NCBI GenBank assembly: GCA_973895155.1
Contig: OZ316899.1
Coordinates: forward strand, 2,811,455 to 2,875,454
Direction of reading: 5' to 3'
Source of the DNA: Marsupella aquatica
Lineage: Eukaryota > Plantae > Marchantiophyta
DNA length: 64,000 nt
Part shown: positions 1,320 to 40,017 of the stretch, in pieces
Layout of the letters: every line of letters begins with the position of its first letter
Numbering within the stretch: position 1 is the stretch's first letter
The notes under the pieces: generated by a model
Seen by the model: the letters and a program-made list of their open reading frames with translations, nothing else
Told to the model about the DNA's origin: nothing
The model's database searches: none
Program-made: the position numbers and the translations under genes

Positions 1320-4300
1320 TTCTCAAACGGGGCAAGGGGAAAGATTGGAGTTAGAGGATGATTACCCGATCTGCGAGGTTTGCCTGCGCGCTGACATAAG
1401 TCACACCCTCGGATAAAATGGGCTACGTCGTGATGAAGCGTGGGCCACCAATAACCTGCGTCCAAGATTTTGTGAGCCGTGGTGACCGGGGCGAAGTGTC
1501 CTCCTGCCTCTTCCTCGTGCATAGCTCGCATGACAATGATCGTCTTGTTATAGTCTAGGCATCTGCGGATTTTCCCATCGACGCCTTCCTTATGCAGATG
1601 TCCGCGGATCATCATGTATGGTGCGGCCTTGCGGAGAAAGACCGACGCGGCCTCTTGGTTTATGTTACTTGGAATGCGGGCCGTTAAGAGGAAGGTGATT
1701 AGGTCCCCATACCATGTTGGTTGGTCCGTTTCTACGCGGAATAACTCCTCATCCGGGAATGCATCATCGACAGGTGCGTCGTCCGACTCCCCTTCGATCC
1801 TTGAGAAGAAGTCCGCATTTACGTGAGCTTTCCCTGGTCGCACCCTGACTTCGTAGTTAAATTCTTGGAGCAGCAGGACCCAACGGGCTATTCTCCCTGT
1901 TAAGTCTGCTTTGTTTACCATGTACTTCAGGCTGTCATGGTCAGTATGGAATACTACCTTATACCCCAATAGATAATGGCGAAACTTTTTACACGAGTAG
2001 ATGATTCCCAAGGCCTCCCGATCGGTGGGCAAATAGTTTTTCTCTACGGCAAACAGTTGTCGACTTGCAAAGTAAATGGGGTGGTCACGTTTTTCGTCGT
2101 CCAGTTGGCTTAGGACTGAGCCGATGCAGAACCCAGACACGTCGACATACACATGGAACTCCTTGTTCCAATCGGGGGTAGTCAGAATCGGAGCCATCAT
2201 GAGCTGGTTTTTTAGTTCGTCAAAGGCTGATTTTCGACGGGGAGTCATTTCTATGACCGCGTCTTGCTTCATCATTTCCATAAGGGGTAGGGCTATCTTA
2301 GCAAAATCCTGAATGAATCGTCGGTAGTATCCTACGCAGCCTAAGAAGGATCGCACCGCCTTCTGGTCCGCTGGGTAAGGGACGTTCATCCATGCGGCCA
2401 CCTTCTCCTGGTCCACCTCGATCCCCCGTTTGGACACTCGGTGTCCAAGTAGCACTCCTTCCGTTACCCCGAAGAAGCATTTGCCCGGGTGTAATTTCAA
2501 CCCTACTTCCCGGCACCGCTCCAAAGTCCGCCTCAGATGTTCTGGGTGCTGGGCGATTGTTCCAAAGATGGCAAAATCGTCTATGAACACCTCCAAAAAT
2601 TCTCGTAAGAAGTCATGAAAAATATTCATAATGATTTGCTGGAACATAGCCGGGGCATTGCATAAGCCAAAGGGCATCCGCCTGAACGCGTAGGTTCCCC
2701 ACTCGGTTATGAATGTGGTTTTGAGCTGGTCCGATAGTCTGATCCAAATCTGGTTATAACCTGAATATCCATCTAGGAACGTGTACACCTCATTTCGGGC
2801 TACCATGTCAAGGACCATATCCGTGTAAGGTAGCGGGTAATGGTCTTTCCGAGTAGTGTCGTTGAGCTTCCGATAGTCTTGGCATATTCGAATTTTAGGT
2901 TTACCATCAGGCCCTACCTTCTTAGGAACCACCACAATGGGGGAGACCCATTCGCTAGATAAGACGGGGTAGATGATGTCCGCCACGATCAGTTGATCCA
3001 ACTCCTCCTTTACCAAGACGGAATGTATTGGGTTTAGTCTTCGTTGCCTTTCTCGGACAGCATGAGCACCCAAGTTTAGATCGATGACGTGTTCGCCATA
3101 GGCTGGTGAAATCCCGGTTAAGTCTCGGTGACTCCATGCGAAGACGTCCTCATATTCCGATAGGAGTTCTTGGATGGCCTTTTCCTCTGGCGCTCGTAGG
3201 CCATAACCGACGTTGAATGTTCTCTCCCTCTTGGTGGTGTACCTGCCATAGGATTCCTTGCGGATTACCTCCACATGGTCTCTGGTGGCCCGGTCAAGGT
3301 GAGCTTCCAATTCCTCTAGTCTGGTGCCATCGTAGGCCACAGGTTCCCAGACTGTCGGCTGGTCCTTTGGGAGTTCCTTGGGTTCCTTTATTACGGACAG
3401 AATCTCGGGGCTCCAGGTAACCTTTTTCTTTGCGGGAGGAGTGACGGTCTGAGTAGCGTTTTCCTCGGGTATACCGGGTAAGGCCAGCCGGCCAACTGCC
3501 TTCGTAGGGCTCACCCTGCCGGGGAATGCTCCGCCCGTTGCCGCATCATCTCCTTCTGGTTTCCCGGGTGCTTCGATTTGGGCCGCTGGTCTGGGCTGGT
3601 TCAGAATATGGGCTTCTCGGACGGCATTTACCCCGAAGACTTCCTCTTCATCCAGGCGAGAGATTAACTCCACCATATTCACCTCTTCTTCTGAGATGTC
3701 CTCCTCCGAGTCATATTCTTCGGGTCCCTGGGGCGTCTCGCCCTGGTAGTCTTCTTCCTTCCAGGACACCGTCGTAGTCGGGTTACCGAATTGTAATTCC
3801 TTCCTTCCCCAGTCGGTAACGACTCGGGCACCGTATAACCAGGGTCTGCCCAGCAGTACTGGATAAGAAGAGGGTCGGACGGGTCGCATCACCAGGTAAT
3901 TTAGAAAGAACTCGAGGCCTCCAATCCACGTGGATATCTTGGTTAACGTCCCCAGTGGCATGATCCTAGCGCCGTTTGCTAACCGAATGGCGCGCGCCGT
4001 GGGTTGATAAGATGTATATCCCAACCTTACGGAAGTGTCCTCTGTCATGATGTTTACACCGGACCCACCGTCTATCAGTACAAACCGAACAGTACAGCCC
4101 GCTATCTCGATAGAGACTTCCGGCGCTCCTAAGTCCTGGTAAATCATCATACAGTCGGCTAAGGTGCTTACCCGAGGTAGCCGTCGCCTCCTCTTTCCTA
4201 TCAGCATCTCCTTGAGTTGTTGCCTATACTTCGGGTTATCCTGCAATAGTTGTCCGACAGTGGCTGTGGCTGCACAGTTCTGAACATCCTTTTTGATGTC

Positions 4301-13810: not shown

Positions 13811-16800
13811 ATACCAAGGGATCGGCATACAAGCCGATTACGAGGGCAGAACAAATTGAGGCCCTATTAGAAGCCGAGAGAGCACAGCGGCCTGACTCTC
13901 AGGAGCAAGAGGTGGATGAGATGGACAAACACAATCCAGAGCCAAGGCAGGAAGGGGAGCCGACCACCAATTCAAAACCGAATAGACCGGCAAGGGGACA
14001 ATCTATGGACACCAAGGAAGGGACCGACTCGGCTAGTCCAGCCGAGATTCCAGTTTATGGAGGTATGAGATTGGAGAGACTGGAAGCTGAACTGGACCCG
14101 AATTTGAAGAAGCAGATTAATATGATCCAAGCACGGCAATATCGGAAGCTCGACTTAGGAGAGGGAAGAGAACTGAACTTAGGGAGAAACCTAGCACCTG
14201 AGCTCGAGAAAGAGATCAGTGACTTATTGATTGAATTTCAGGATGTGTTTGCATGGAGTCACCAAGATCTAAAGGGAGTAGATCCAACACTAGGGGAACA
14301 TCGAATTGATCTCATGTTAGGAGCCAAATCATTTCGACAACCAATTCGAAGGATGAACCCGAAGTATTCCCTGCTGGTCAAAACAGAAATCGACAAACTA
14401 GTGGAAGCTGGATTCATCACTCCAGTCCTGCATTCAGACTGGGTGTCTCCAATTGTGATAGTTCCCAAGAAAGCTGGACCCAATGGTAAACCCAAGATCC
14501 GGGTTTGTCAGGATTACAGGAAGCTGAATGAAGCAACATTAAAAGACCATTTTCCTTTACCGTTTACTGATATGGTACTAGACATGGTAGCCAGTCATGA
14601 ACTATATTCATTCATGGATGGATACTCTGGTTATAACCAAATCAGGATTCGGCAGGAAGACCAAATCAAGACGGCCTTCATCACGGAATGGGGGATCTAT
14701 GTCTTCAATCGTATGCCGTTTGGACTCTGCAACGCACCAGCTATGTTTCAACGATTAATAGTGAACATTTTTCATGATTACTTGAGAAAGTTCATGGAAA
14801 TCTTCATTGATGACTTTGCAGTATTCGGGAAGGCATCGAAACATGCTAAATACCTCAGGAAAACCTTCATGAGATGTAGAGAGGTGGGTCTCAAGTTACA
14901 CCCAGATAAATGTTTCTTTGCAGTAACCGAGGGGGTGCTACTAGGTCACAAGGTATCAAGGAAGGGCATTGAGATTGATAAAGGTAAGCTAGCAGTATGG
15001 CTAGATATCATGCAACCTAAGAACATAAAGGATGTAAGATCCTTCTTGGGATGCATTGGTTACTATCGCCGGTTCATCAAGGATTTTGCCAAGCTAGCTT
15101 TACCATTAACCAACATGCTCAAGACAGGAGCAGACTTCGAACCCACACCCGAATGAGTCACAGCGGTGGTAGAATTGAAGCAGATGTTAGTAGAGGCCCC
15201 AGTCATGATAGCACCGGACTGGAACAAAGATTTTCATGTTTTTGTAGATGTCTCGGGCTTTTGTATCGGCTCAGTACTAAGTCAGTTGGATGAGAAAGGA
15301 AGGGACCATCCCATATACTTCGCAAGCCGTCAGCTTGCCGATGCCGAACGGAACTACTCCACCACAGAGAGAGAAGCATTAGGAGTCATTTATTCTTGTA
15401 AAAAGTTTAGGCATTATTTACTAGGGTACAAGGTAATCTTTCATACTGATCATGAAAGTTTGAAGTACCTAGTCAATAAGCCGGACCTTACAGGCAGAGT
15501 AGCAAGATGGATTTTGCTATTACAGGAGTTTGACTATGAGCTGAGGATCAAGCCGGGAAAGTTACACGCCAATGCCGACTTCTTTTCAAGGATCACAGGT
15601 AAACCTGCCACGGATTGCATCGATGATCGATTCCCCGACGAGGAGCTATTCGTTGTGGAAATAGTTGATACATGGTACCCTGAGATTTTACAATTTCTCA
15701 GCACTTCCAGATTACAGCCAGGATTAAGCCGAGAGCAAGCCGCAGTCTTTGTGCGGAAGGTCAGACAGTATCAGTGCATTAAAGGCATACTGCACAAGCA
15801 TGGAATCAACGGCACGATTCAAAGGTGTTTGGAAAAGGGAGAGGTAAAACGAGTCCTACGGGCCATGCATGGAGAGGAAGCCGGAGGACATTTTGCCCCA
15901 GTAACCACGTCTAAGAAGATATTAAATGCCGGTTACTGGTGGCCCACCTTGCACAAGGATGTCTATCAGTTTATCAAACAATGCGATCCTTGTCAACGAG
16001 CGGGAGGACCAAGGGCGTCCACCAGACATCCACTGCACCCTATTCTACCTCTGGCACCATTCGAGAAGTGGGGTATTGATTACATTGGACCTCTGAAACC
16101 ACTGACCCACCCTCGACGGAACAAGTACATAATCCTGGCTACGGATTATGCAACTAAATGGGTAGAGGCCAGACCAACAACGAAGGATGATGCAATTACT
16201 ATGGCTAGATTCATGTATGAGCAGATCTTCACCAGGTATGGAGCACCCCTAGAATTAGTTAGTGATAGAGGAACCCATTTTTTGAATGATATAATTAGTC
16301 GTTTAAATGAGCAGTATTTAGTTAAACATAGGCCTACTACTCCCTACCATCCAAAGGCAAATGGGTTGACAGAACAAGCAAACGGAATTATAGGAAAGAT
16401 ATTGAACAAGACAGTAGCTCAGAACAAACTCGATTGGGATGATAAATTGTTTGCTGCTGTTTTTGCTTACAATCTTGCCTATAAATCCACTACCGGTCAT
16501 ACACCCTTCTTCTTAACCTTTGGACAAGAAGCCCTGGTACCCATGCAACTTGAGATACCGACATTTCAAGTTACAATTGAGGAAAGAGCCTCAGCGGAGG
16601 AGAGCCTAAAGGAGCGAGAATATAGGTTAGAAGCTTTAGAGGAGGCGAGAATGATTTCAGCCGAGAGAGTAGAATATAGACAGAATATCATGAAGCAGCA
16701 GTATGATAAAAAGTTGAAAGTAGTTAGTATTCACACCGGTGATCTTGTGCTACTTTATGACAGTAGGTATAGTAGGTTTCCAGGAAAGCTTTACACTCGC

Positions 16801-16958
16801 TGGTTAGGACCCTTTAGAGTAACCATGATATTCCCCAATGGCTCCGTACAATTGGCCAACATTACGGGAGAGGTATATCCAGTTCGCATCCATTATGACC
16901 GCCTCAAGAAATACTATATGGACGAAGATGAAGTGGTTCGCGAGGACGCTTCACAATT

Positions 16959-16971
16959 AAGTGGGGAGCTA
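16959..16971 (+). other. PPT of element B
   Basis: AAGTGGGGAGCTA directly before the TGTGATG LTR start. Confidence 0.88.
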
Positions 16972-19900
16972 TGTGATGCCTAGACAGGAATCACTCGGCC
17001 AGTTAAGTGGGTAAAGCAGGAAGGCACCCTAGGAACACCTTAGTATAGGGACAAAACAAGGAAAATATAAACAATTAGGGGCAACCATGGAACCCGGGCC
17101 GAGGCCGGAGGTAAGGACGCTGAGGGTGAAAACTCGATTAGGGTTAGGGCGCGTTAAGCGTCGGCGGCTAGGAAGGATCAACGGGAAGAAGGACCGGCAG
17201 AGGAGAGGGGTAAGGAGCGCTTGTGGGAGATGGTGGCTCATTTGCGAGCACGAACTAGGCAGACGACTACGGGAGGCCAACTACTGTCAGCTGCTTAGGC
17301 AAGCACTCGGGGAGAGAGTAGATACCGACGATCGACCTAAGGAGGGTATGAGCAACGTCAATCAAGCGGCACATTTCTGGGGATGCCTGTTCGAACGGGC
17401 AACTGAGTACATCAAGACTTACGAGGACGAGGAATCAGAAAGGGCAGCTCGAGAACGGCAGGAGCTTGCTCGATTGTGGGAGCTACAGAAGACAGCTTTC
17501 TTAGGAGGCGAACTCATCAAGGACGAGTTCCTGTGGACGCCTACTTCCAATCAACTCGACGATCTTCTGTTTTGCAAAGACAGCGTCTTCGGCATCCGAG
17601 AGGCCATCAAGAACTGCAACGACATACACTGGGAATTAAAGGGTAGCATGGAAAGGTGGACCCAGGCAACGGTGCTAGGAGAAACCTCCATGGCAGCAGA
17701 GATGAAGAGGAAGGGAGCCATCAACGATGAAGCCACCCCGACAAAAAGAACGAGGTCGGCGGCACCAAAGAAGCCAGCCGAGTAGCAGAGCAGGAGGCAG
17801 GGAGAAGCCGAAGAGGAGGAGGTCGATCCCATCAAGGCCATTCCAACCAGGGATGACACCTGGAAGGGCTGGGCGGCAACCCTACCGGTGGAGGTGCAAC
17901 TACATTTTGCACGGGAGGAGGATGCATGCTTTACGGCCATGCAGACCAAGAAGTACCAAGGCTTCATGGCCGGATCCGGCTTAGAGGCCTTTGTAAGATT
18001 ACCATGGCTGAAGCCGGAGGTACCGGAGTCAGACCTATTAGAATTCGTGGGGTCATGGGAACCCGAGACCAATTGCACGAGGATATATGGGAAGGATTTC
18101 TATCTTACTCCCAAGGTAATTGCCGAAGTGTTTGGCTTGCCGATAGGCAATAAGACCAAAGTTGATACCAGGAAGACCTTGCCTGACAAGGAGTTCCGGT
18201 CGTTCCCCGGGCCATCAACGAAGAATGGCTTCTTCCGAAACACCTGCACCAACCCGCACATAGGAGAGATGATCAACTTCTTGCGGGTGACCATGCATTG
18301 TAACTTGCCGAGGGCAGAGATCGGCAAAGCACAGGTCTATCTGGCAGAAAGGCCAGACCCAAGCCGGGACTACAACGGGTACCTCCTCAACCAATTGAAG
18401 AAGATCTTAAAGGAGGAGCAGCAGGTAATCGGCATGGGGAGCGTATCGCAGCTTGGCTATCACATGCCGCTGTTGTGCCGGTATGCCAGAGGTCAGACTT
18501 TTGCCCCAGTACTTCCCCTGCAGGTAAGGGCACCCGAGGAAGCTCCAACGCCGAGGCCGTTGGCTGAGAAGCCTCAACCACCTGTTAGCCCTACGATCGA
18601 GCAGGTGTTTAGGCCCAGGAAGGAGGACTTGCCGATGCAGCAACCAGGCATGCAGAGTCTGCTGAAACTACTGGAGAAAGAAAAGAAATCGGCATCGGCA
18701 ACAACAACGGCAACGGCAACAATGCAGGACACTACTACAGAGGTAGGCCTACACCGGCTCACAAGAGAAAACCCCTTTGCTGGAGACAAGGAGAGAATCA
18801 GGCCGGAATCCAAGCCAGGTGTTCAAATGTATGTGGGAATCTCAAGCTCCGAATCTGAGGCAGAATTGCCTGAAGCTCCTACCGACGAAGAGGAGAGGGA
18901 GAAGCCGGACGTCCAAGAAGTAGAGGAGGCAGTGGAGGACTGCAGCCATGATAATTCCGGCTATGGGTCGGACCATCACGTTCCAGGAGTAAGGACTTGT
19001 GGCCAGTTTGTCCCCACACTTCCAAGGGTAGTGCGAGGGGACCCCAACCAGCAGAGTAGCCCTGAGTCTCCCCCACCAGATGTTGCTCCCCCGAGCTTTG
19101 ACGGCATAAAACAGACGGTGCAGGAATTTCAGGAGCGAATCAGGCAGGAAGAGGAGGCAGCCCTGGCTAGGGAAAAGGATTTACCAGGAGGAGATTGGCC
19201 GGAGGACATCAGGCGGCTAGCCGAAAAAGGAAGCAAACCTCTAGCCACGATTGAAGAGATCCGCAGGACGGCTTGGGAGTAGAGGCCGCGATGGGCGATG
19301 CCGATCACTTCTACTTACTCCACCTACGCTAAGAATAGAGCCATGGAGTATGGTGAGATGTGTGGGGAACTTGCGCTCGGCATCTTTGGAGAGGAGTTGG
19401 AGGTAGGACCCTTTTTCCATAGGGAGCAGTTGGAGAAGCACCAATTAGAAGAAGCGGTGGCTTTAGAGAGAAGCAAGAAGGACGAGGTCATTCGGCGGCT
19501 TAGGAGGATGGAAGCCGAGATTGAAGATCTAAGGGCGGCCAAGAAAGCCCAAGATGAACTGCGGATTAAACGGCATGAGCTGAACATCATGCAGGGGCAG
19601 TTGGACACCGCGTAGGCTGATAATCAGAATATCAAGGAAAAACTGACTCAGACGCAGGGAGAGTTGGCCGACACGATCAAAGAGAGGGAGAAGTGGAAGC
19701 AAGAGCTGAAGAATACAGAGGAGGCCCACATAACAGCCAACAGCCGGGCCATGGCGGAGACCCAAAGAAAGGAATGGGCGTTGAAGGGGGAGCTCGAGAA
19801 AATCCGCGGAGCCCTTGAGCAGAAGGAGGTCGAGTTAGGGAAATCCTATCAAGGGATTATGGCGCTGCAGCAGGAGCTTGCGTCCCTGACGGCCAGCTTC

Positions 19901-29151: not shown

Positions 29152-29309
29152 TGTTGTGAGGTATAGAACAACTGATACTTCATTCCCTTCCATATCCTTA
29201 CATATAGGCTATCCAATAGCTAGGCGGTTAGACAGTTAGTGTGGTCTAACCTGAGTAGACGTAAACCTAGTTAACCTCATGTATGGTCTGGTTAACTCGG
29301 GTTACAACA
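29152..29309 (-). repeat. Element D 5' LTR (158 bp)
   Basis: TGTTG...CAACA terminal inverted repeats; lies between the PBS and the Gypsy F RT sequence. Confidence 0.8.
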
Positions 29310-31603
29310 AAAGGGTGTTTGTACAAGGAGAGGGATCAAACACTTAGAGGAGATGGCCTAAGACAGTTTGTGTGGGAGCACTTACAAGATGTGGGAGCTA
29401 TTCTACAAAGACTCAAGGAAGTAGGAGTAACTCTATCTGGAGAGAAGTCAGCTTTCGGGTTACAAGAGATCATGGTAGTAGGGCAAGTTTGTGGCCCTTA
29501 TGGAAGAAGACCATGTGAAGCAAAAGTGGATGCCATCAAGGACATGGAGAACTACAGAACTACCTCAGAGGTAAGGAGATTTCTTGGGGCCTGCATCTTC
29601 TACAGAATATGGATACCACATTTTGCTCACATTGCATAACCTCTCTATGATCTTCTAAGGAAGAATGTGAGGTTTGTATGGAGTGTAGGCCATACAAAGG
29701 CTATGCAACAATTGAAAGAAGCTTTGACTAGCTCACCGGTGTTACAACCTCTGAAGTACAATGGTATTGACCCAATAATTGTGACCATTGACTCAAGTCC
29801 TCATGCATCTGGATGGCAGTTGGACAAGATGAGGAAGGACAAAGGTTTGCCGCACGGTTTGGGGCAAAAATATTTACAGAAAGACAGAGGCATTATCCTC
29901 AAGTAAAATGAGAGTTGTGGAGTGCGAAGGTAGCACTTCGCCAAGAAAGAGACTATTTGATAGGAGCAAATGTAATACTAGAGACAGATTGCCTACCCTT
30001 GTTGGGAATGATAGCCAATTGTGATACTCCAGATATTGCAATGCTTCGATTGATAGCATTCATCAGAATGTTTAATCCTGAGTTAAAGCACATTGCTGGG
30101 AGAGATAATCCAGTAGCTTATATGCTTTCCCGAGCTCGCTATAGGGATGAGGAGGACCAGGGAATGTGCCTTCATAGTACATATGGAGAAGATGAAGGGG
30201 AATTGAGGTTTGAAGAGGAAGCTTATTCTGGGGAATTGTTGCAGATAAGACGTTACCTTGCCACGTTGCAGAAAGATTCAACATGGAGTAAGCAAGACTT
30301 CAACAGAATTTGGAAGAAGTCTTACCAATTCATGATTAGAGATGGATCCCTTTGGAAGCATCCAAAGAAGAAGGGGCACATACTTCTAAGAGTCATTGGT
30401 AGAGAAGAAGAGAAACACAAAATTTTACATGACTTGCATGATTCTGACGTGGCAGGACATAAGGGGAGAGAAGCTACTTATGAAAGGATTTGAAGGCTAT
30501 ATTGGTGGCCAGGGATGTATGTAGATGTAAGTAAGTATGTGGAAACTTGCAAAGTGTGTCAACTCTACTCGAAGGTGAAGCATAGAGATGGACTAAAACC
30601 CACGTACCCTCTTTCCCTACACTACCAATCGGTTGTAGGTGTGGTACACATGCCGAGGGGAGTAAGAGGAGCCAAGTATCTTGTCTTGGCTATTGAGGAC
30701 CTCTCCTCCTACATTGAAGGTAGAGCCTTGACAACAAATAAGACCGAGGCGATATGCAGATTTGTATTAGAGGACATCATTGCAAGGTATGGATGCTTTG
30801 ATCGCATGAGGGCAGACAGAGGGGAGCTCAATGCAGAGGAAGCAGTTGCATTTTTCAGGAAGTTTAGGGTGAATCTCAAATTGACAACTGCTTACAATCC
30901 TAAAGGTAATGGCAAGAGTGAGAGGGGACACCAACCAATTGTGAATGCCTTGATTAAGGCATGCAAGGGGAGAATCTCACTTTGGCCAAATTTCCTTCCC
31001 CTAGCACTTATGGCACATAGAACAACTTGCACATCGGTAACAGGATATGCACCTTCAGAGTTGATCAATGGTCAACTTCCACTCATGCCAATAGAAGAAG
31101 ACATTAATAGTTGGAGGGCAATAGAGTGGGAGGATGATATATCTCAAGAGGATTTGATTCTTCGTCGCATAGAGCAGTTTGATCACACTCCTACAAAGAT
31201 CCAAGGCGCCATTAAACAATTGAAGCAAAAGAGAATGGCTAACAAATCCCGCTTTGACAAGACCCATCGATTGTGACCCAAGACAATCCAAGAAGAGGAT
31301 TGGGTCTTAGTCTCTGAAGGCGGTCTCAGACAAGATCACTCCTCGATCAAGAAATTTGCACATCGTTGGAGGGGCCCATTTGTGGTAGTTACTACTCACC
31401 CAAATTCCACTTACACTCTTTGTGAGTTGGATGGAGCAATTCATCGTGTGCCTTATGCAGGAAAAAGGGTGAAAATATTCAAAAGGCGAACATGTTTTTT
31501 AGAGGAAGAGGCCATCGATTCAGACCAAGAAGAGGAAGAGGAAGAAGAAGAAGAAGAAGATGAAGAACCTGAAAAGCAAGAGGAAGAAATATTCATTGAG
31601 TGA
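29310..31603 (+). pseudogene. pol: Element F pol remnant (RT end, RNase H, integrase, acidic tail)
   Basis: Fragments 29283-29639, 29667-29906, 29915-30493, 30515-31276 and 31382-31603, with stops and frameshifts. Confidence 0.88.
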
Positions 31604-31610
31604 AGTAAGA

Positions 31611-31826
31611 GATTAGTAGGGGTGACTATTAAGTGTGGTGCAGACTACAAGATGCACAAGATTAGTAGGGGTGAGTATTAAGTGTGGTGCAGACTACAAG
31701 ATGCACAAGATTAGTAGGAGTGACTATTAAGTATGGTGCAGACTACAAGATGCACAAGATTAGTAGGGATGACTATTAAGTGTGGTGCAGACCGGAGGCT
31801 GCATAGGTTTAGTAGGGGTGATATAT
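31611..31826 (+). repeat. 49-bp tandem repeat (4 units plus a partial), each unit containing the PPT-like motif
   Basis: Unit GATTAGTAGGGGTGACTATTAAGTGTGGTGCAGACTACAAGATGCACAA at 31611, 31660, 31709 and 31758. Confidence 0.95.
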
Positions 31827-32329
31827 TGTGGGGATTCTTTGTTTAATAAGTTCTTCCTAAGTATAGCTTAGTAGTATAGGATAGTAGTTTGAATTCTTAT
31901 ATTATATGCAGTCTATAGTGTGCATGCTATAGTGCACGACCTACAGTGTGCATGCTACAGTGTATGATCTACAGTGTGCATGCTACAGTGTACGGTCTAT
32001 AGAGTGCATGCTACAGTACACGGTGTACAGTATGCATGCTACAGTGTAAGATCTAAAGTGTGCATGCTACAGTGCAAGACCTACAGTGTGCATGCTACAG
32101 TGTACGATCTACAGTGTGCATGCTATAGTATACTGCCTACAGTTGCTCCACTCATGTAACTATAGTACTAGCACACTTACTTGCCTTGGATGTGTGACAC
32201 ATGGCTTTCATCCGTGTACCATGCTTGATCCGTGTGCTTGAGGTGTGAGCACTATAAATAAAGAGGAGAGGGGCTCTCTTCCCTCACTCCCCATCTTTCA
32301 TCAATTAAGTGTGAAGCCTTAAGAATCCA
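31827..32329 (+). repeat. Putative 3' LTR of element F
   Basis: Follows the PPT, starts with TG, has TATA-like CTATAAATA near 32252 and a partial inverted terminus. The partner LTR is not in the window. Confidence 0.55.
31913..32143. repeat. Minisatellite: 8 x 28 bp higher-order unit of two 14-bp subunits (CTACAGTGTGCATG / CTACAGTGTATGAT)
   Basis: Unit starts at 31913, 31941, 31969 and so on to 32109. Confidence 0.93.
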
Positions 32330-32660: not shown

Positions 32661-33939
32661 AAATAGCTGCATATATATACTTAGAGTTAACTCAATGCAT
32701 AGTATTTATTTGAAATGAATGATCTTTTCGTTGAATGATTCTAGATCTTGTCATTAGAATAAATATTAGTTGGATGGAATATTTGATAGTACGATAATGC
32801 CCAGACCAGTACCTGTTCTTCCTCTCCCTAATCCTTTCCTTATTAGAATTCATGTACTCCAAAAAGAGATAATGCGTCAGAATATGACTTTTCACTAGCA
32901 TTTGCAACTGCGGTGTTAAATTCAATAGAGCCAATTGTATACCCTTATGTAGTTTATGGGCAGGATTGGGTTTGGGGGTATTTACATAAGACAGGAAACA
33001 GGAAAACAGGAAACCCAAAACAGGAACCGATGACAGGAAACAGGAAACCGAATACACCAAACTTAAACCAAAAATACCGGAAACTTTTATGTTGTTAAGC
33101 AAGAACTTGACACCCAAAACGGGGTGTTTAGAAGATTGTAGTCAAGTCCAAAAAAAAGATGTAGAATAGCAACAGGCGCTCGAATACTAAGCCAAGGGGA
33201 ACGGTACATTTGAACCTGGGTTATACTAAAAAGCATAGGCACGCACCAGGCGCTGCCATTGTAATTGTACAGAATGGAGCTCTAAACAAGAAACTTGGGC
33301 GCCTCCGTCGGACCGGTGAAGATACTAGCGCCGGGCGCTAGTTATATCGCTCAGTCAGACGGAGGCCGACGTGATAAATACGACGAAACCACCGGGACCA
33401 TCGGACCAACGTTTAGGGTTTTACATCCAAAAGAGCCAACTCCAACCAATTTGCATAATTGAACGCCACCCCAAAATCCACAAAGTCTTGCGATACAATT
33501 TTTTTTTAGTAAGATGGTAGTGCCAGGCGCTTACAAAAGATCAAAGTGATCTGCATAACCACACCGTAAACGGAAGGTATGAAAGTTTCAAAAAGCTACG
33601 CGCATCCGACGCCTCTCGCTTAAAATGGCCAAACAGTAAACTAGTGCTAGGCACTTCACCAAACTCCACACAAACGATAACCAAAATGGCTACATCTAAC
33701 GACAAGATTTCTAAATTCCAGTCGAGTCCCAACAAAGTCTTCATCACATTCGGAAAAACTTGAGCGCTATGGGCACCATAGTCTTAGAGACCAACGCTAG
33801 CGCCGGGGGCGCTAGTCCGCTCATTAGTCGATGAGCCACATTCATCGTTCACTCCAGCATTAGATCAGGCTCTATCTGGAACGAAACCGTGCTCACGGTT
33901 TCTCACAAATACCATCGACGGAACTCGCTCATCACCGGT

Positions 33940-34811
33940 TCAGGGAAACACGCCAGGAATGGTCATGTTCTGGAAATCAACACGGCCAAGTTCTTCCTGT
34001 TTCCTCATCTCATCCTCCCGAGTTGGACTGTAAGGAGGAGGTGGCCAGTGAATCGTAAACCGCTCTGCAAATCTCCTAGGCGGAGAATCCCTCAGCCATG
34101 GGATCAGATTGTCACCAAGACTAATGGCTTCGTCTTGGGAGAGATTAAAACGGTTGTGGAAAGCACTTGTCTCCGACCATTCAGGCTGCTCAGTTTCTGG
34201 AACCAAGCCCTCCTCCAAAATGATTGTGGTGTGTCTTTGAAAAGAGGCCATGGAGATTCTCCTCGGGTTATTCATGGTAAGACACCTCTAGGCAGTGGAT
34301 GGCAGATTCAAAGATATAGTTGTCAATACGACCCCGGTCAGCGAAAGAGCTTGAAGATTATCGAAAGTGGGAACAGAAACCACTAAAGCAATAGCGAAAC
34401 TAGGCAGTCGGGATTTAATCTCCCAAGTATTATAAGCAAACCCGTTCGACCTGGATATGCCCATCGTAATGAGGGAGGGGGTGGACGTTGCATCCTCAAA
34501 GTCCCCAAACTACCCTTCAACATGGAACGGTCACTCCCATCTCACATGATAGTTGCGATGTTTATCTTCGTCTCCATTCAAAAATGGTCGACCAAAACCA
34601 GTATTGGAATCCCGAAATGTTTCTGGCATCCAAAGTCCCGTTGTGACATGAAGTGGCCGTTTGGATGAGAAAAATCCGGTACCAGCTCACATGCAAGTCG
34701 TGATAGGCCAAACGAACTTAGAACGGGACAAAAGATTACCTCAAAACTTCCACTGACGTCATCCAGAGCGTACGAGAGAATCATTGTAAGATTGCCTTGA
34801 CCGTCATACAA
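33940..34811 (-). pseudogene. Degenerate ORF of unknown function (~290 codons)
   Basis: ORFs 34578-34811 and 33940-34275 can be joined by a frame switch near 34580 and a few TGA/TAG stops. Begins right after the palindrome at 34818. No recognisable motif. Confidence 0.45.
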
Positions 34812-35613
34812 TTATAGTAGCGCCCGGCGCTAATATTACAGTATTAAAATGTTTACGTTAATAACAGAAGGAACAAACAAAACAGTTGTCGCTGACATGT
34901 GGAAAACACTTAACGGACAATGTTTCCGAAATATGTTTTAGTAGCGCCAGGCGCTAGCATAATTCAATTGAGAAATAGACCCAACATAAACGGAGTTGCA
35001 GGTCAATTGTTTCCGACCACTCGGAATGTCCAGTCTTAGGAAGTAAACTGACCCTCAAAAATGGACAAAACGAAATTGAAAAATATGCGGGTATATGATC
35101 ATGGACATTAAATTATGGTAGCACCATGCGCTACCATAAAAACATTGCAATATAGAGAACATAATAGAATAAAGATACACCACAAAAGTATCCAATGTAA
35201 CGAATATATTTGAATAAATGATGTTTGCAGGTTACATAACAGTAGCGCCCGGTGCTAGTATAACTTCAGTGTATATAAATCCCAAAATACCCTTTCGAGG
35301 CAAATCAATCTGAGAATTCTGATTCACTTGACTCGGACCTATCGGTGGATTCTGCCTCCATGTCTAAAAATTCGTTCTCGGCCATATCATCAACACATCG
35401 ACTACGAATAAATTTTCTATCAGACCCTCTCCTTAATCTCAAACCTTTATGCTCCCAATGGAGGGTCCGCACACTATCAGCTCGTCTAGCAATATTCTCA
35501 GCATAGGAAGGTAGTACAAATGGTTTCTCGGGAGTTTTAATATATCGCCTAGCTACTTTCCTTCTGAGTTGGAAACGCCGGCGAAGATTCCAGTCTGACC
35601 TGAGGACGAGAAG

Positions 35614-35623
35614 TTTAGGGTTT
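35614..35623 (-). promoter_or_regulatory. Telo-box (AAACCCTAAA); second copy at 33412-33421
   Basis: Exact plant telo-box in intergenic spacers, same orientation as the cassette genes. A ~100-codon open frame without ATG follows at about 35600-35308. Confidence 0.35.
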
Positions 35624-35733
35624 TATGTCAACGCCAAGAATATTTTAAAAAATGAAAAAAACCAGAAATCGAAGAGAGAATAAGGTAATCTACTAAAAAA
35701 CCGGGTTTGCTTAAGAGCTTACTCGGAAGCTTC

Positions 35734-38700
35734 TTACTCAGAAGAGTCTCCGCTGTCACTCCCTCCATTAGATCCTGGATCTTCTCCGGTAAGAGACACT
35801 TTGGGACTGTTAGGATCCTCCTCTTCTTCCCCCTCTTCTGTCTCATCCTCATCTTCAGAATCAAAATTTAAGACAGACTTCAGTTTGTCTCTCTTTCGTT
35901 TTGAAATTGAAGACTTTGGAGGGGCTTTGGGCTCAGACTCTTTTGGAGTAAGAAGATCCAGAAATACCTTAGAAGCGGTTTCAACAAACTCCTTCCTATT
36001 CTCGAGTCCAATTACAAATTGACCACAATATCACCTGCAACAAATGTACTCCCCAAACCTACAGCCCAATCCAGAACAATATCTCCTGGACACGTAATTA
36101 GTTCCAACACAGACTGCATGAATCCTGGATGTAGTCTGGCATTCCCGACAAATTCAAGCTCTGGAGTTGTATCAACCTTTGCGAAGGGAAGTCCAATCAG
36201 ATTTGTAATGGAAGGATCCTCTGTTTTTGAAAGGGGTTTGAACTTAGGATCTTTTGGGACTTTCACCTTGGATGATATCCGCAAAAATACATCCAAACGT
36301 AAAGTGAATACCTGAAAAGGGAACAAAATAGAGGAAGGACCCTTAGATTACAATAGCGTCGGGCGCTAGCAAATAATCCACAAAATCATGTTGAATAGTT
36401 TACCTGAAATAAGGTCAAATAAAAAAAGAAAGTAATAGATAATATGAATAGCGCCGGGCGCTAGCAAAAGGATCAACAAAATTACCTATAAATCAGACTT
36501 TGCTTTGTACATTGGGAACCCCATGACGACATTATGTGTACATAGACACTGGAATTTCTTGGACTCCTGACAAGCGGAGATGACCTGCAAAATTTGATCA
36601 TACTCCCCCGTATGGAGGATCGCAATAATTCCGTCATCCGACAAAAAAGGATCCATTTCCCGGAAAAAGGATCGGGCTAGGGTACAGTCGGGGACGTTCC
36701 ATTTAGGGACCTTTCTGTCAAGCAAAGTCGGTTTTAGTCCAATTGGCAAGTAAATAAAACCAGCGTCAACACCAAAAGGTCTTTGCTTCCCACCCCTCAC
36801 CACTCCTTTCAGCCGGCATCCAGATTTGATCAGGTCTTTCCCCCACTTTTCGACATCATTTACCCATTCTGGCTTCTCCTCCTTATTAAACACACTGTCC
36901 ACAAGTTCACTGACACTAGTCTCAACGAAACAATGACGAGACGACTTGGCTTTAAAATCCCCAACATCACGTTGGAGCCCAGTGGCAGCCTGAGAATCGC
37001 GTTCTGATTGTCCAGCATCTCGAGTCCTTCTGCTTTTCTTTTTTGTACTCGTCGCATCGACTGGGACAATCAATTTCCCAGAATTAACTGGTGTAAGTGG
37101 ATCTGGCAAAGCGCCAGTATTTTCTTCTGAAGCTTCTGGAGTAACCTTTGTATCATCTGTGCCATCTGCATCTGACTTCTTTTGACCTATGAACATATTG
37201 CAAAGAATGTGGGATTAGGGCCTTCAAGCAAACACTGATGAAGATTGAATCACAAGAATGGCAGCGCCGGGCGCTAGCAAACATTTGAAAAAAATATTGA
37301 AAACTTACGTTTCTTTCCGGATCGCGTGGAGGCACTTGGCACTGCAGTGTCTATTTTAACTTTCCCTCGTGGCTTGCGGCTCCTATCTACTTGGACAACT
37401 ACTGTCTCACAGATTGTCTGTAACTCCGTAGAAGATTTATTGACGTCGCTAAGGAGACCTTGCTTCATCTCAGAAACAATGTTGGGAAGGATCTGCGACT
37501 TTGCAAGTTTCAGAAACCAATCCTTCTCCACTTCATCAAAGGGTGAATCCCACTTGTCTGTGTCAAGGTACCATGGGCAGTGAATTCTTTCCCACTCGGA
37601 CATTTCCCTTGGGGGTAGTTTACCCTCGGTAGGATACATCGAGTATAAGTCACAAACAAGATCTCCCTCCTTTACAGTAATCCAGTTGTGAAATGCGGCT
37701 GGATACGCCCAAAGAGCATCTGGGGAATGAATTTCCATCCAAATGTAGAAACGATACAAATACCTCTTGGCCCTCTTCTGATTTTTCTTGGTAGATACCT
37801 CTTTATCAGGTATTTTGATGGCCACATGGTGTTGAAGAACTTTGCCTTCACAAGATCCCCATACCTTCGGAATTCACTTGAAATTACTTCAATCAGATTT
37901 TCTACCGAGTCACACCCTGACTGGGCAAGCCTATCAACCGGTAGCATTTCAATCGCTGCGGAAATTGCCGAGTGTAGCATCCCAATTGCAATTCCCTCAA
38001 CGGTATTCCATGTTTTCCATGTGTGGCACCACTGCTTCACTGGATCATCGTTCACACTCGAAGGGTGGAAGAATTGTTTTCTCAACTCTGGAGTACAGTG
38101 AGCAACGAGCAATGTACACCTCAATTTTGGATCAAGCGCCGAAATTGCAGTGAAGAGTCTGGCACGGTCCATAGTGCAAACAACCGAATCTGGTTTTTTC
38201 TCTCGCTTGTTTTTCTCTGTCAAAACATACATCTCTGAACAGGTACCTAGAAAATTTTCAAACTCAGGACTAAGAAGAGGAGTGATTTTGGACATTTTCG
38301 TGGACCAATCTTTAGTAGATTCTTTCAACATGAGCGATTGCCGCTTTGTGATGTCATCAGCCGACCAAGGATTACCTTGACTTGCTGCGAGTGCCATGTC
38401 CATCTTGAACTGGTTAGTGTAAGCTTTAATTTTGTTTTCGCATAAAATATAGACTAGAGCTTCCAGAGGCATTTTTCTTGTGTACCAAGAATATTTTCGA
38501 GTCTTCTGTTTGATATACTCAAACTTTGCATAATTGGCGCTGTCAATGATAGACTTGTAGTGCTCTAGATCGTGAGAAAGAATCCTCCGGATTCTGTCTG
38601 CGTCAAGGATCCACGACGGTTCAACAACGGCATGCCCTAACCTGCAATACGCCAGGTTTTCAATTATTAGCGTCGGGCGCTAGCTTAACTTAAACACTCA

Positions 38701-39571
38701 ATTAGCCTATAAACACTGTATTATTCTATAAACACTCCATAAACACTATATTTATGTAATAACCAAGTATTGCGGAAATTGTTAATTACAAGCTAGGGCA
38801 AAAAATGTACTGGTTCACAGTGTGCATAGCCGCCTCAATCTGAATTTGCAAAGCTTTGTCACCCTTGAAAATTGTGCAGAGAACTCTGGGATGATACTTG
38901 ACGTTGTCAGGATTTTCCTTTGTGACCATCGTCCACGAGTAAAGTCGATGAGTCCCGTCAAACATTGAGAACATTTTGTCTTTCAAGATCATAAAGGCAG
39001 GATCTGCCTCGCACTCCAACTCAAACTTCTCGTTCTCAGCAACCCAAATTGCATCCCAACTCTCCTTGATCTCTTCAGTGCAGATTTGCTCCACACCATC
39101 CGAATCGGTCGGCTGTACAAAAAACCGCATTCCTATCCTGGGATTGTATCCACTACTTCGGAATGAGTCTTTCAATTTCTCAATTGACGCACTCTCCTTC
39201 TGTAACATCCGAACAGCCTCCATGTGGACCAGGCGACAAAGCGGAATCCGTGGAGGTTCCTTCTCATTCCCCCGAAAATCTTTCCCAAACGACATAATAT
39301 GTTTGGAGATGACTTCATCCATTCCAAGTCCTACCTCGTTGCCCTCTCCCAAAGCGTAATCGGTCATGCCATCAGTCTCCATTCTGCCCCTTCTTGGCTT
39401 CTGGCTCGGGAGTGTTGTGTTTGACAAAGGAATCGCTCCGCTTGATCTTGTAACACGACGCGAATAGAATGCCCCAGAGAATGAAGATTGTGTACTCTCG
39501 CAATGACCCTAATCTCCCTCCGGAACCATGGTATACCCTCTTGGAGAGCTTGGAGCGCTTGAAGGTTGCAT
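35734..39571 (-). pseudogene. ParB/Srx-like plus beta-class N4/N6 DNA-methyltransferase-like fusion gene; 4 exons, ~1125 codons, 2 nonsense and 2 frameshift lesions
   Basis: Model: ATG 39571; exons 39571-38811, 38641-37309, 37186-36486, 36311-35734; GT-AG introns with consistent phases (2, 1, 0). TAG at 39509-39511 and 36486-36488; 1-nt deletions near 37825 and 36025. ParB-like IPLCRL...R...IEKLKDSF...G...FDGTHRL. MTase-like PGDIVLDWAVGLGST..AG and CGQFVIGLE. Confidence 0.8.
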
Positions 39572-40017
39572 CGTGGAGCCCCAAAGTTTGCGAAGGTGCT
39601 TGTACGACACAGAGCCAGTGTCTATTCTCACGCTCTGAACAAATTACCATACAAAAAGAACAAGCAGGAAACCTTTAAAACTTGGGTGGTTTACATCATG
39701 GGAGGTAGATCGATGCGGAAGAAAAGGATCTCACTCACCAATCATGACAAGGACAAGTGGCCAATACTGTTTAGAATGAGTATATGTAACGCCTCTTTTT
39801 AACTGGGGTAAGGGAGGAGCGATGATCCGTAGGCTATTCTTAAGGAAGTCAACTGCAAAAAGCGTGAAACAATGAGTACGTTCATGCACTTTACCGTTAG
39901 ATATAACCATTGGGATAATACAAGTCATTCCTTTCAATACTAGCGCCAGGCGCTAGCATTCAAAAACCACTAAAATAACATCATTAACACTGATGTCAGC
40001 CATGATATTATGTCAGC

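Follow-up and report, generated by a model that had tools for sequence, protein, structure and literature searches.

The palindrome array and its gene

The 64-kb stretch of Marsupella aquatica DNA analyzed here (hereafter, the window) contains at 33167-39955 a cassette in which copies of a 15-bp palindrome, TAGCGCCNGGCGCTA, are interspersed with a gene for a predicted three-part protein comprising a ParB-like, a helical and a methyltransferase-like domain. The gene lies on the minus strand in five blocks and was modelled from stop-to-stop frames and GT..AG sites; its boundaries are the authors' own prediction from sequence (Table 1). The cassette region is a low-GC island (~43%) flanked by retrotransposon sequence. 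Terminal inverted repeats of the window element were searched for and none were found.

Table 1. Palindromes and gene parts in the cassette, in window coordinates
Feature	Position	Strand	Remarks
Palindrome, perfect	39941..39955		~410 nt upstream of the gene's first candidate ATG
Exon 1	38811..39529 (at least)	-	ParB/Srx-fold domain, DGNHR-type motif reading FDGTHRL; true start uncertain
Intron 1	38642..38810	-	GT..AG, 169 nt
Palindrome, 1 mismatch	38668..38682		Intron 1, ~25 nt before 3' splice site
Exons 2-3, one block	37309..38641	-	Helical domain, no known fold
Intron 2	37187..37308	-	122 nt
Palindrome, 1 mismatch	37262..37276		Intron 2, ~31 nt after donor
Exon 4	36486..37186	-	First half of methyltransferase-like domain; motif IV slot YLPI
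Intron unit A	36404..36485	-	82 nt; acceptor abuts unit B donor
Palindrome, perfect	36449..36463		Intron unit A, 21 nt after donor
Intron unit B	36312..36403	-	92 nt
Palindrome, 1 mismatch	36354..36368		Intron unit B
Exon 5	35734..36311	-	Motif I VLDWAVGLGST, then frameshift ~36029, acidic tail, stop codon
Palindrome, 1 mismatch	35243..35257		Downstream spacer
Palindrome, 2 mismatches	35119..35133		Downstream spacer
Palindrome, perfect	34942..34956
Palindrome, perfect	34818..34832
Indel variant TAGCGCC-GGG-GGCGCTA	33798..33814		Spacer 3 nt instead of 1
Palindrome, decayed, 2 mismatches	33518..33532
Palindrome, perfect	33326..33340
Palindrome, decayed, 3 mismatches	33167..33181		Leftmost array trace

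According to the original prediction, made from the letters of the window, about 14 such palindromes are confined to one cassette, and the counts bear this out. At up to two mismatches TAGCGCCNGGCGCTA matched 11 times, all within 33326-39955, against 0.13 matches expected from dinucleotide-preserving shuffles (shuffle maximum 1), and no such copy was found in the remaining 57 kb of the window. At up to three mismatches there were 14 matches in the 64-kb window vs 1.47 expected, 13 of them inside 33167-39955; the sole match beyond the array, at position 3967, is in line with chance expectation.

The claim that the palindromes avoid coding exons, with one in each intron unit, also holds: the four copies within the gene (38668, 37262, 36449 and 36354) are distributed one per intron unit, with none in the modelled exons, although non-coding sequence makes up only ~12% of the gene span. 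Copies had further been said to adjoin the starts of minus-strand open reading frames (ORFs). The frames concerned, at 34578-34811 and ~33.5-33.9 kb, are without homologues and their status as genes is unsupported. A homologue search with the downstream ORF at 33943-34287 was likewise empty, and the other small ORFs gave no Pfam match.

Decay of the copies follows the proposed CG-to-TG type: of the 11 substitutions in half-sites, six turn C into T or G into A within CpG or CCG. The flanks of the copies, described beforehand as unrelated, are so only beyond ~9 nt from the core, where inter-copy similarity ends. Closer in, the site extends beyond 15 bp, with a W-T-R-S bias at positions -4 to -1 outside TAGCGCC across 24 half-sites, and a stretch of ~33 nt (repeat family D7) is common to three intron copies. 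A 300-bp duplication was considered as the source of the pairs spaced 124 nt apart at 34.8-35.3 kb and was ruled out, since ~33 nt around the motif aligns and no more. Just left of the first decayed palindrome, at 32985-33060, short direct repeats of the ACAGGAAAC type are clustered; this cluster may mark the edge of the element.

Conservation of the palindrome in close relatives

Homologous loci are designated below by L numbers. The palindrome is retained in the same intron by homologues at 50-80% identity in the ParB-like part, with L003 as an exception (see below). Identity to the window over the ParB core was 80% for L001, 67% for L004 and 61% for L002, and all three carry a window-type palindrome in the first intron, at a distance of ~25-65 nt ahead of the 3' splice site; in L002, intron 1 holds two copies and a third lies upstream. 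The position of intron 1 is common to the window, L001-L004, L006 and L009-L011, and in a nine-way alignment of this intron the palindrome was the sole alignable block. Retention of the palindrome at homologous intron sites amid otherwise unalignable introns supports the earlier view that selection acts on the motif itself, and links the motif to this gene family. The intron-1 variants of the window and L001 (TAGCGTCGGGCGCTA) were examined as a shared ancestral state, which was rejected: the two are mirror images in sense orientation and thus represent independent C>T changes.

One intron copy of L002, at 1199-1213, carries a symmetric double change, AAGCGCC G GGCGCTT, in which the dyad is kept. 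This could be due to chance or to templated repair within the palindrome, or it could hint at a constraint on pairing.

Such a constraint would be expected if the palindromes acted as nucleic-acid structures, either pre-mRNA intron hairpins or DNA cruciforms, affecting splicing, transcript stability or small RNAs with no requirement for a sequence-specific binder. Perfect dyad symmetry, the short introns with copies near splice sites (21-34 nt after donors, ~25 nt before the acceptor) and the symmetric change in L002 are compatible with this account. It is nevertheless considered improbable. Arrays are also present upstream and downstream of the genes, and the spacer is only 1-3 nt, so that a hairpin must open central pairs. 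C>T changes in one arm are tolerated irrespective of strand; the one in intron 1 of the window gives its sense transcript an A-C mismatch. Furthermore, a structure requires pairing and not identity, leaving the constancy of sequence within a subfamily unexplained.

Different palindromes in distant relatives

In more distant homologues, where the order of the three domains is unchanged, the arrays consist of other palindromes, for example of the types GCTAACGG-NN-CCGTTAGC, CCAGCGA-NNN-TCGCTGG and TTCCGGCGAG-N-CTCGCCGGAA. L006, a metagenome contig with 47% ParB-core identity to the window, contains 12 copies of GCTAACGGNNCCGTTAGC (0.01 expected), located upstream of the gene, in intron 1, in the gap before the methyltransferase exon and in the methyltransferase intron. 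The last of these lies ~22 nt past the donor, matching the place of the window copy at 36449.

This correspondence bears on the possibility that the palindromes represent what is left of a small palindromic mobile element, a miniature inverted-repeat transposable element (MITE) or introner, whose repeated insertions made the introns. The ~33 nt common to three introns and the two tandem intron units with a zero-length exon between them could be read in that way. Against it, similarity between copies does not reach further than ~9 nt from the core, neither terminal repeats nor target duplications were observed, and the intron-1 and methyltransferase-intron positions are common to homologues down to 47% ParB-core identity, indicating that the introns are old. 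The motif sequence also differs among subfamilies at the same positions. A MITE with shared flanks had been named in advance as an observation that would overturn the prediction; this alternative fails because the flanks of the copies are not shared, and an origin of the introns from such insertions is very improbable.

Two further arrays were found in assembly GCA_046195345.1, which is derived from Riccia sorocarpa (PMC11923412). In L007, 30 copies of CCAGCGANNNTCGCTGG (0.02 expected) extend over 15.5 kb and none are present in the next 7.6 kb, and in L005 ten copies of TTCCGGCGAGNCTCGCCGGAA (0 expected) lie just upstream of the ParB-like gene. Downstream of the L005 gene, at 14334-17087, a second palindrome family, CCAGCGGAC-C-CCGCTGG, is represented by six copies and three variants. 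It resembles the L007 type and may belong to an element of another subfamily, either adjacent or nested.

Five further cases were obtained from a metagenome scan with a ParB profile. L009 has two palindrome copies in intron 1, L010 has TTGTTAGCGA-GT-TTGCTAACAA in intron 1, and L011 has a degenerate CGGCGA-GGG-TCGCCG type, also in intron 1; GGTGCCN-GTAA-NGGCACC occurs five times in L015 and GCATTCGG-YG-CCGAATGC three times in L020. The co-variation between motif and subfamily that the original prediction had proposed as a check was therefore observed, with palindromes different from that of the window in L005, L006, L007, L009, L010, L011, L015 and L020.

Palindrome type follows the ParB-domain tree. 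L009 groups with L011 in this tree and L005 with L007, both with good support, and palindromes are related within each clade: L009 and L011 share one type, and the half-sites of L005 and L007 are one base apart. The window clade has TAGCG-type sites, and the CG present in every half-site and the centre of the palindrome are three to four bases apart. Palindrome arrays are not general to contigs of this kind: in ~70 ParB-like loci of moss-type metagenomes, which are more remote, repeated palindromes were absent and neither the helical nor the methyltransferase domain could be detected. These loci act as a negative control and set a limit to the association.

The tree also bears on an account in which the sites belong to a host transcription factor or chromatin protein and were captured as promoter or enhancer modules. 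GC-rich, CG-containing palindromes do resemble many transcription-factor sites, and one copy precedes the gene start. However, L005 and L007 carry different palindromes in one genome, the palindrome type tracks the element's own protein tree, and the 57 kb of the window outside the array hold no copy at up to two mismatches. Capture of host sites is accordingly regarded as quite improbable.

Predicted features of the encoded protein

Searches of Pfam and NCBIfam with all window ORF pieces returned nothing except a weak PF01555 match, and sequence searches of the PDB, with single pieces and with a ParB profile, gave nothing meaningful (a galectin match at E=0.04 is attributed to chance). The family is scarce in the protein databases, where homologues comprised four close matches for the ParB piece, one for the methyltransferase piece and 47 remote matches for the helical piece.

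In the homologue alignment the core of the N-terminal domain is an invariant F-x-x-x-D-G-x-H-R...W, which reads FDGNHRL in most members; DGNHR is invariant save for the N, replaced by T in the window copy (FDGTHRL). An AlphaFold model of the domain (mf64419fd5f01; predicted local distance difference test score, pLDDT, 64) had as its top PDB matches the ParB-CDP structure 6sdk (probability 0.97), Srx, KorB, Noc and PadC. Its neighbours in AFDB were ParB/Srx proteins, DGQHR-domain proteins and DndB clusters, among them one 1005-aa "DNA methylase N-4/N-6". No sequence-level match of the domain to the DGQHR or DndB models of Pfam or NCBIfam was obtained. Overall, a ParB/Srx fold of the DGQHR/DndB kind is supported for the N-terminal domain by the model, with moderate confidence.

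Nine of the top 30 AFDB neighbours of this model are uncharacterised entries with A0A388 accessions, which we take to be from Chara braunii; the 1005-aa methylase is one of them, and another is annotated as Helitron helicase-like. Accessory genes with a ParB fold may thus be common among the transposons of streptophytes. Among Atlas neighbours of the ParB-like domain (38789-39508), fungal DUF3723 was nearest (score 0.96), together with ParB_N and DndB clusters. DUF3723 genes are accessory genes of the fungal Starship elements, which hints at a wider link of ParB-fold proteins with giant transposons.

The helical domain is intact in L006 as the 456-aa protein P0008, the model of which is confident and all-helical (pLDDT 84; predicted template modelling score, pTM, 0.80). 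In the C-terminal domain the methyltransferase motifs are ordered IV then I, with motif I (VLDWAVGLGST) at the C-terminal end. PF01555 was matched at E=0.06 in the window and at E=1e-5 in a Riccia homologue, where the 26.0 bits fall under the cut-off of 26.7. The slot in which beta-class enzymes have DPPY, assigned here by motif pattern, reads YLPI, YLPT, ALPT, DIPT and DLPT in the five aligned members, so that all five follow the pattern (D/Y/A)(I/L)P(T/I). Because the motif IV slot is degenerate in every aligned member, the sequences suggest that the domain is a conserved pseudo-enzyme; such a degenerate motif would fit a binding rather than a catalytic role.

State of the window copy

Two premature stops and two frameshifts make the window copy a pseudogene. 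An in-frame TAG occurs at 39509-39511, six codons past the candidate ATG; a 1-nt deletion at ~37808 shifts the frame; exon 4 ends in TAG at a codon that is CAG in homologues; and a second frameshift lies at ~36029. Most other copies in unitigs from public runs have the extra G at ~37808, which makes that lesion private to the window copy. The family is high-copy, with hundreds of unitigs 90-99% alike across four public runs from two organisms. No splice joints at the predicted introns were found in these four runs, which behave like DNA unitigs.

At 36312-36485 intron units A and B are arranged head to tail, with the ..TTTCAG acceptor followed directly by the GTAAAC donor and hence a zero-length exon; some other public-run copies have a shorter, different stretch at this place.

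Comparison with known systems

A close parallel is VANC of the Arabidopsis VANDAL elements. VANC21 binds YAGTATTAY motifs in VANDAL21 introns, intergenic and terminal DNA, and has co-evolved with them (PMC5735166). As a Mutator-superfamily accessory protein acting on short motifs in the non-coding DNA of its own element, with motif density mattering and with joint divergence of protein and motif (PMC5735166; PMC10398659), VANC shares with the cassette the concentration of subfamily-specific motifs in non-coding DNA and their change along with the protein. The fold of VANC is MAIN/plant-mobile-domain-like (PMC13547354), whereas the present protein has ParB-fold, orphan helical and methyltransferase-like domains, making the two systems analogous and not homologous. 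VANC motifs are 9-nt, asymmetric, in one orientation and in tandem repeats; here the motifs are dyad-symmetric palindromes of 15-23 bp. The host of VANC is Arabidopsis, in contrast to the bryophyte-type plants considered here.

The palindromes had been called parS-like. In keeping with that name, the ParB-parS, KorB-OB and Noc-NBS systems combine a ParB/Srx-fold N-terminus with multi-copy palindromes of ~16 bp on the encoding replicon. Bacterial ParB, however, has a GERRxRA motif for cytidine triphosphate (CTP) and a helix-turn-helix (HTH), where the present protein has DGNHR and no detected HTH, and the comparison is therefore kept as an analogy only. The setting also differs, being a eukaryotic nuclear transposon with sites every 0.1-1.4 kb in contrast to the few loading sites of bacterial parS. 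No Pfam match to a ParA partner was found among the scanned ORFs of 33-40 kb, in an element that is truncated and decayed. DndB/DGQHR proteins share the ParB fold with a DG(Q/N)HR signature and a link to a DNA-modification-type enzyme domain, but these are bacterial, whereas the gene described here is eukaryotic and intron-bearing, and its ParB-fold domain is fused to a pseudo-methyltransferase and gives no match at the level of hidden Markov models.

Red algae provide another published precedent. In a Bostrychia cassette of Plavaka, Mutator and Zisupton elements, the ParB-like PAG3 lies beside tandem inverted-repeat arrays and is proposed to bind its own transposon (bioRxiv 10.1101/2025.02.11.637652). 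The description of the cassette as an undescribed system was consequently too strong, since this 2025 preprint contains transposon ParB-like genes, inverted-repeat arrays and the same idea (bioRxiv 10.1101/2025.02.11.637652). A ParB-like protein, adjacent inverted-repeat arrays and a PF01555 domain are common to the PAG2/PAG3 cassette and the present one. As compared by description only, the ParB-like domain of the PAG cassette is fused to a 2-oxoglutarate (2OG) oxygenase and the methylase (PAG2) to SET, in separate genes; here, unlike in PAG2/PAG3, the ParB-like and methylase-like domains occupy one polypeptide with a large helical insert and a degenerate motif IV. None of the pieces and homologues scanned had a Pfam match to a 2OG oxygenase or SET domain. 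Intronic sites and co-variation across subfamilies, as found here, are unreported for the red-algal cassette, and no description of this system was found in the literature on ParB with Mutator-like elements in plants. What is new is thus the fusion that includes a degenerate methyltransferase, the occurrence of this architecture in bryophyte-type plants, the presence of one site per intron and the co-variation over at least seven palindrome types.

Proposed function of the array

On balance, the comparisons lean modestly towards the palindromes being cis recognition sites of a transposon-borne accessory system, with the three-part protein as the predicted reader. Retention of the site in place amid decaying introns, exclusion from exons and re-coding with element phylogeny together point to cis sites read by an element-encoded trans factor, and their dyad symmetry suggests that the factor acts as a dimer on double-stranded DNA.

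The cassette would then be a member of a high-copy plant DNA-transposon family encoding a protein of ParB/Srx (DGQHR/DndB), helical and degenerate methyltransferase parts, which would bind as a dimer to CG-containing palindromes with the half-site WTRS-TAGCGCC. Sites would build up wherever coding constraint permits, leading to dense occupancy of the element's own copies. The most likely purpose would be to counteract or modulate silencing, or else autoregulation of the element, similar to VANC in VANDALs; analogy with VANC21 would accommodate anti-silencing, autoregulation or recruitment for transposition. As a pseudogene, the window copy could serve solely as a target in trans.

Several observations weigh against this reading. 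The model of the ParB-like domain is only moderate, with PDB E-values of 0.07-1, and the CTP-binding GERRxRA motif is not present in the domain, the alignment showing D-G-x-H-R instead. Neither an HTH nor another recognisable DNA-binding module was detected in the protein, and fold searches with the helical domain (PDB, AFDB clusters, VIA-align wide and Atlas) gave no match, helical folds being easily missed. L003, at 61% ParB-core identity, has no palindrome in intron 1 and just one upstream, and most of the comparison loci are short metagenome contigs. Co-variation, furthermore, cannot tell apart two proteins of one element, and the 15.5-kb array of L007 covers a neighbouring minus-strand gene resembling a Mutator-type transposase. 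A SWIM finger was matched in this gene at E=0.0017, and its weak Atlas neighbours are of WRKY/FAR1, DBD_Tnp_Mut, MULE and ZSWIM type.

The sites could hence be bound by a transposase or another element-encoded factor, the main candidate being a Mutator-type transposase with an N-terminal WRKY/FAR1-type zinc finger, in which case the ParB-methyltransferase-like protein would have another role. In a 2026 preprint the AtMu1 transposase is reported to activate cognate copies sequence-specifically. Transposase sites are typically terminal or subterminal, however, and not placed one per intron, and in the window, L001, L002, L004 and L006 the sites occur without a transposase in the partial sequence examined. 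The L005 array lies directly upstream of the ParB-like gene, and in red algae inverted-repeat arrays are found beside PAG3 across Plavaka families. A transposase or similar factor as binder is therefore rated as a lesser possibility, though one to be taken seriously.

We infer that the sites are bound by the three-part protein and not by the transposase, and that DNA is the target. This protein is favoured because its gene accompanies the sites in every locus, because the L005 array sits at the 5' end of the ParB-like gene, because a short CG palindrome could plausibly be read by a dead methyltransferase, and because the red-algal inverted-repeat arrays are reported beside the ParB-like PAG3 across Plavaka families. 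The original prediction that the cassette encodes a protein recognising its own element through these sites is accordingly upheld in part: the motif is tied to the gene family and re-coded by subfamily, whereas the transposase beside the Riccia copy is a live rival as binder.

A broader and decidedly speculative proposal is that of a portable self-recognition module of bacterial ancestry in plant and algal transposons. In such a module a ParB-fold nucleotide-dependent DNA clamp, fused to a dead methyltransferase reading CG palindromes, might load at parS-like sites dispersed over the element, spread along it and shield it from host silencing, with protein and sites being re-coded jointly in each lineage and the module moving between superfamilies.

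To our knowledge, VANC in the Arabidopsis VANDALs is the sole transposon self-recognition system that has been worked out experimentally. If the favoured assignment of the palindromes to the three-part protein is true, the cassette would represent a second such system, unrelated to VANC and built from bacterial-type ParB and methyltransferase folds. Its range would take in liverwort-type plants, the metagenome relatives and other public assemblies, with a link to the red-algal PAG genes being possible. Several natural protein-palindrome pairs make specificity testable by swaps of sites and proteins, and the pairs would form a natural series for how a DNA-binding protein and its sites re-code jointly. 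For epigenetics, interest would lie in the methyltransferase-like domain, which is retained family-wide despite its degenerate catalytic motif and may read CG sites.

Other features of the window

The stretch at 29300-32160 contains a degraded Ty3/gypsy pol fragment (reverse transcriptase, RNase H and integrase, with stops), followed by 49-nt tandem repeats at 31561-31854 and then by a 14/28-nt tandem array at 31883-32162. The palindrome GGCCTA-NNN-TAGGCC, which is unrelated to the array, occurs four times in the window (10542, 21429, 44815 and 62647), apparently once per long terminal repeat copy.

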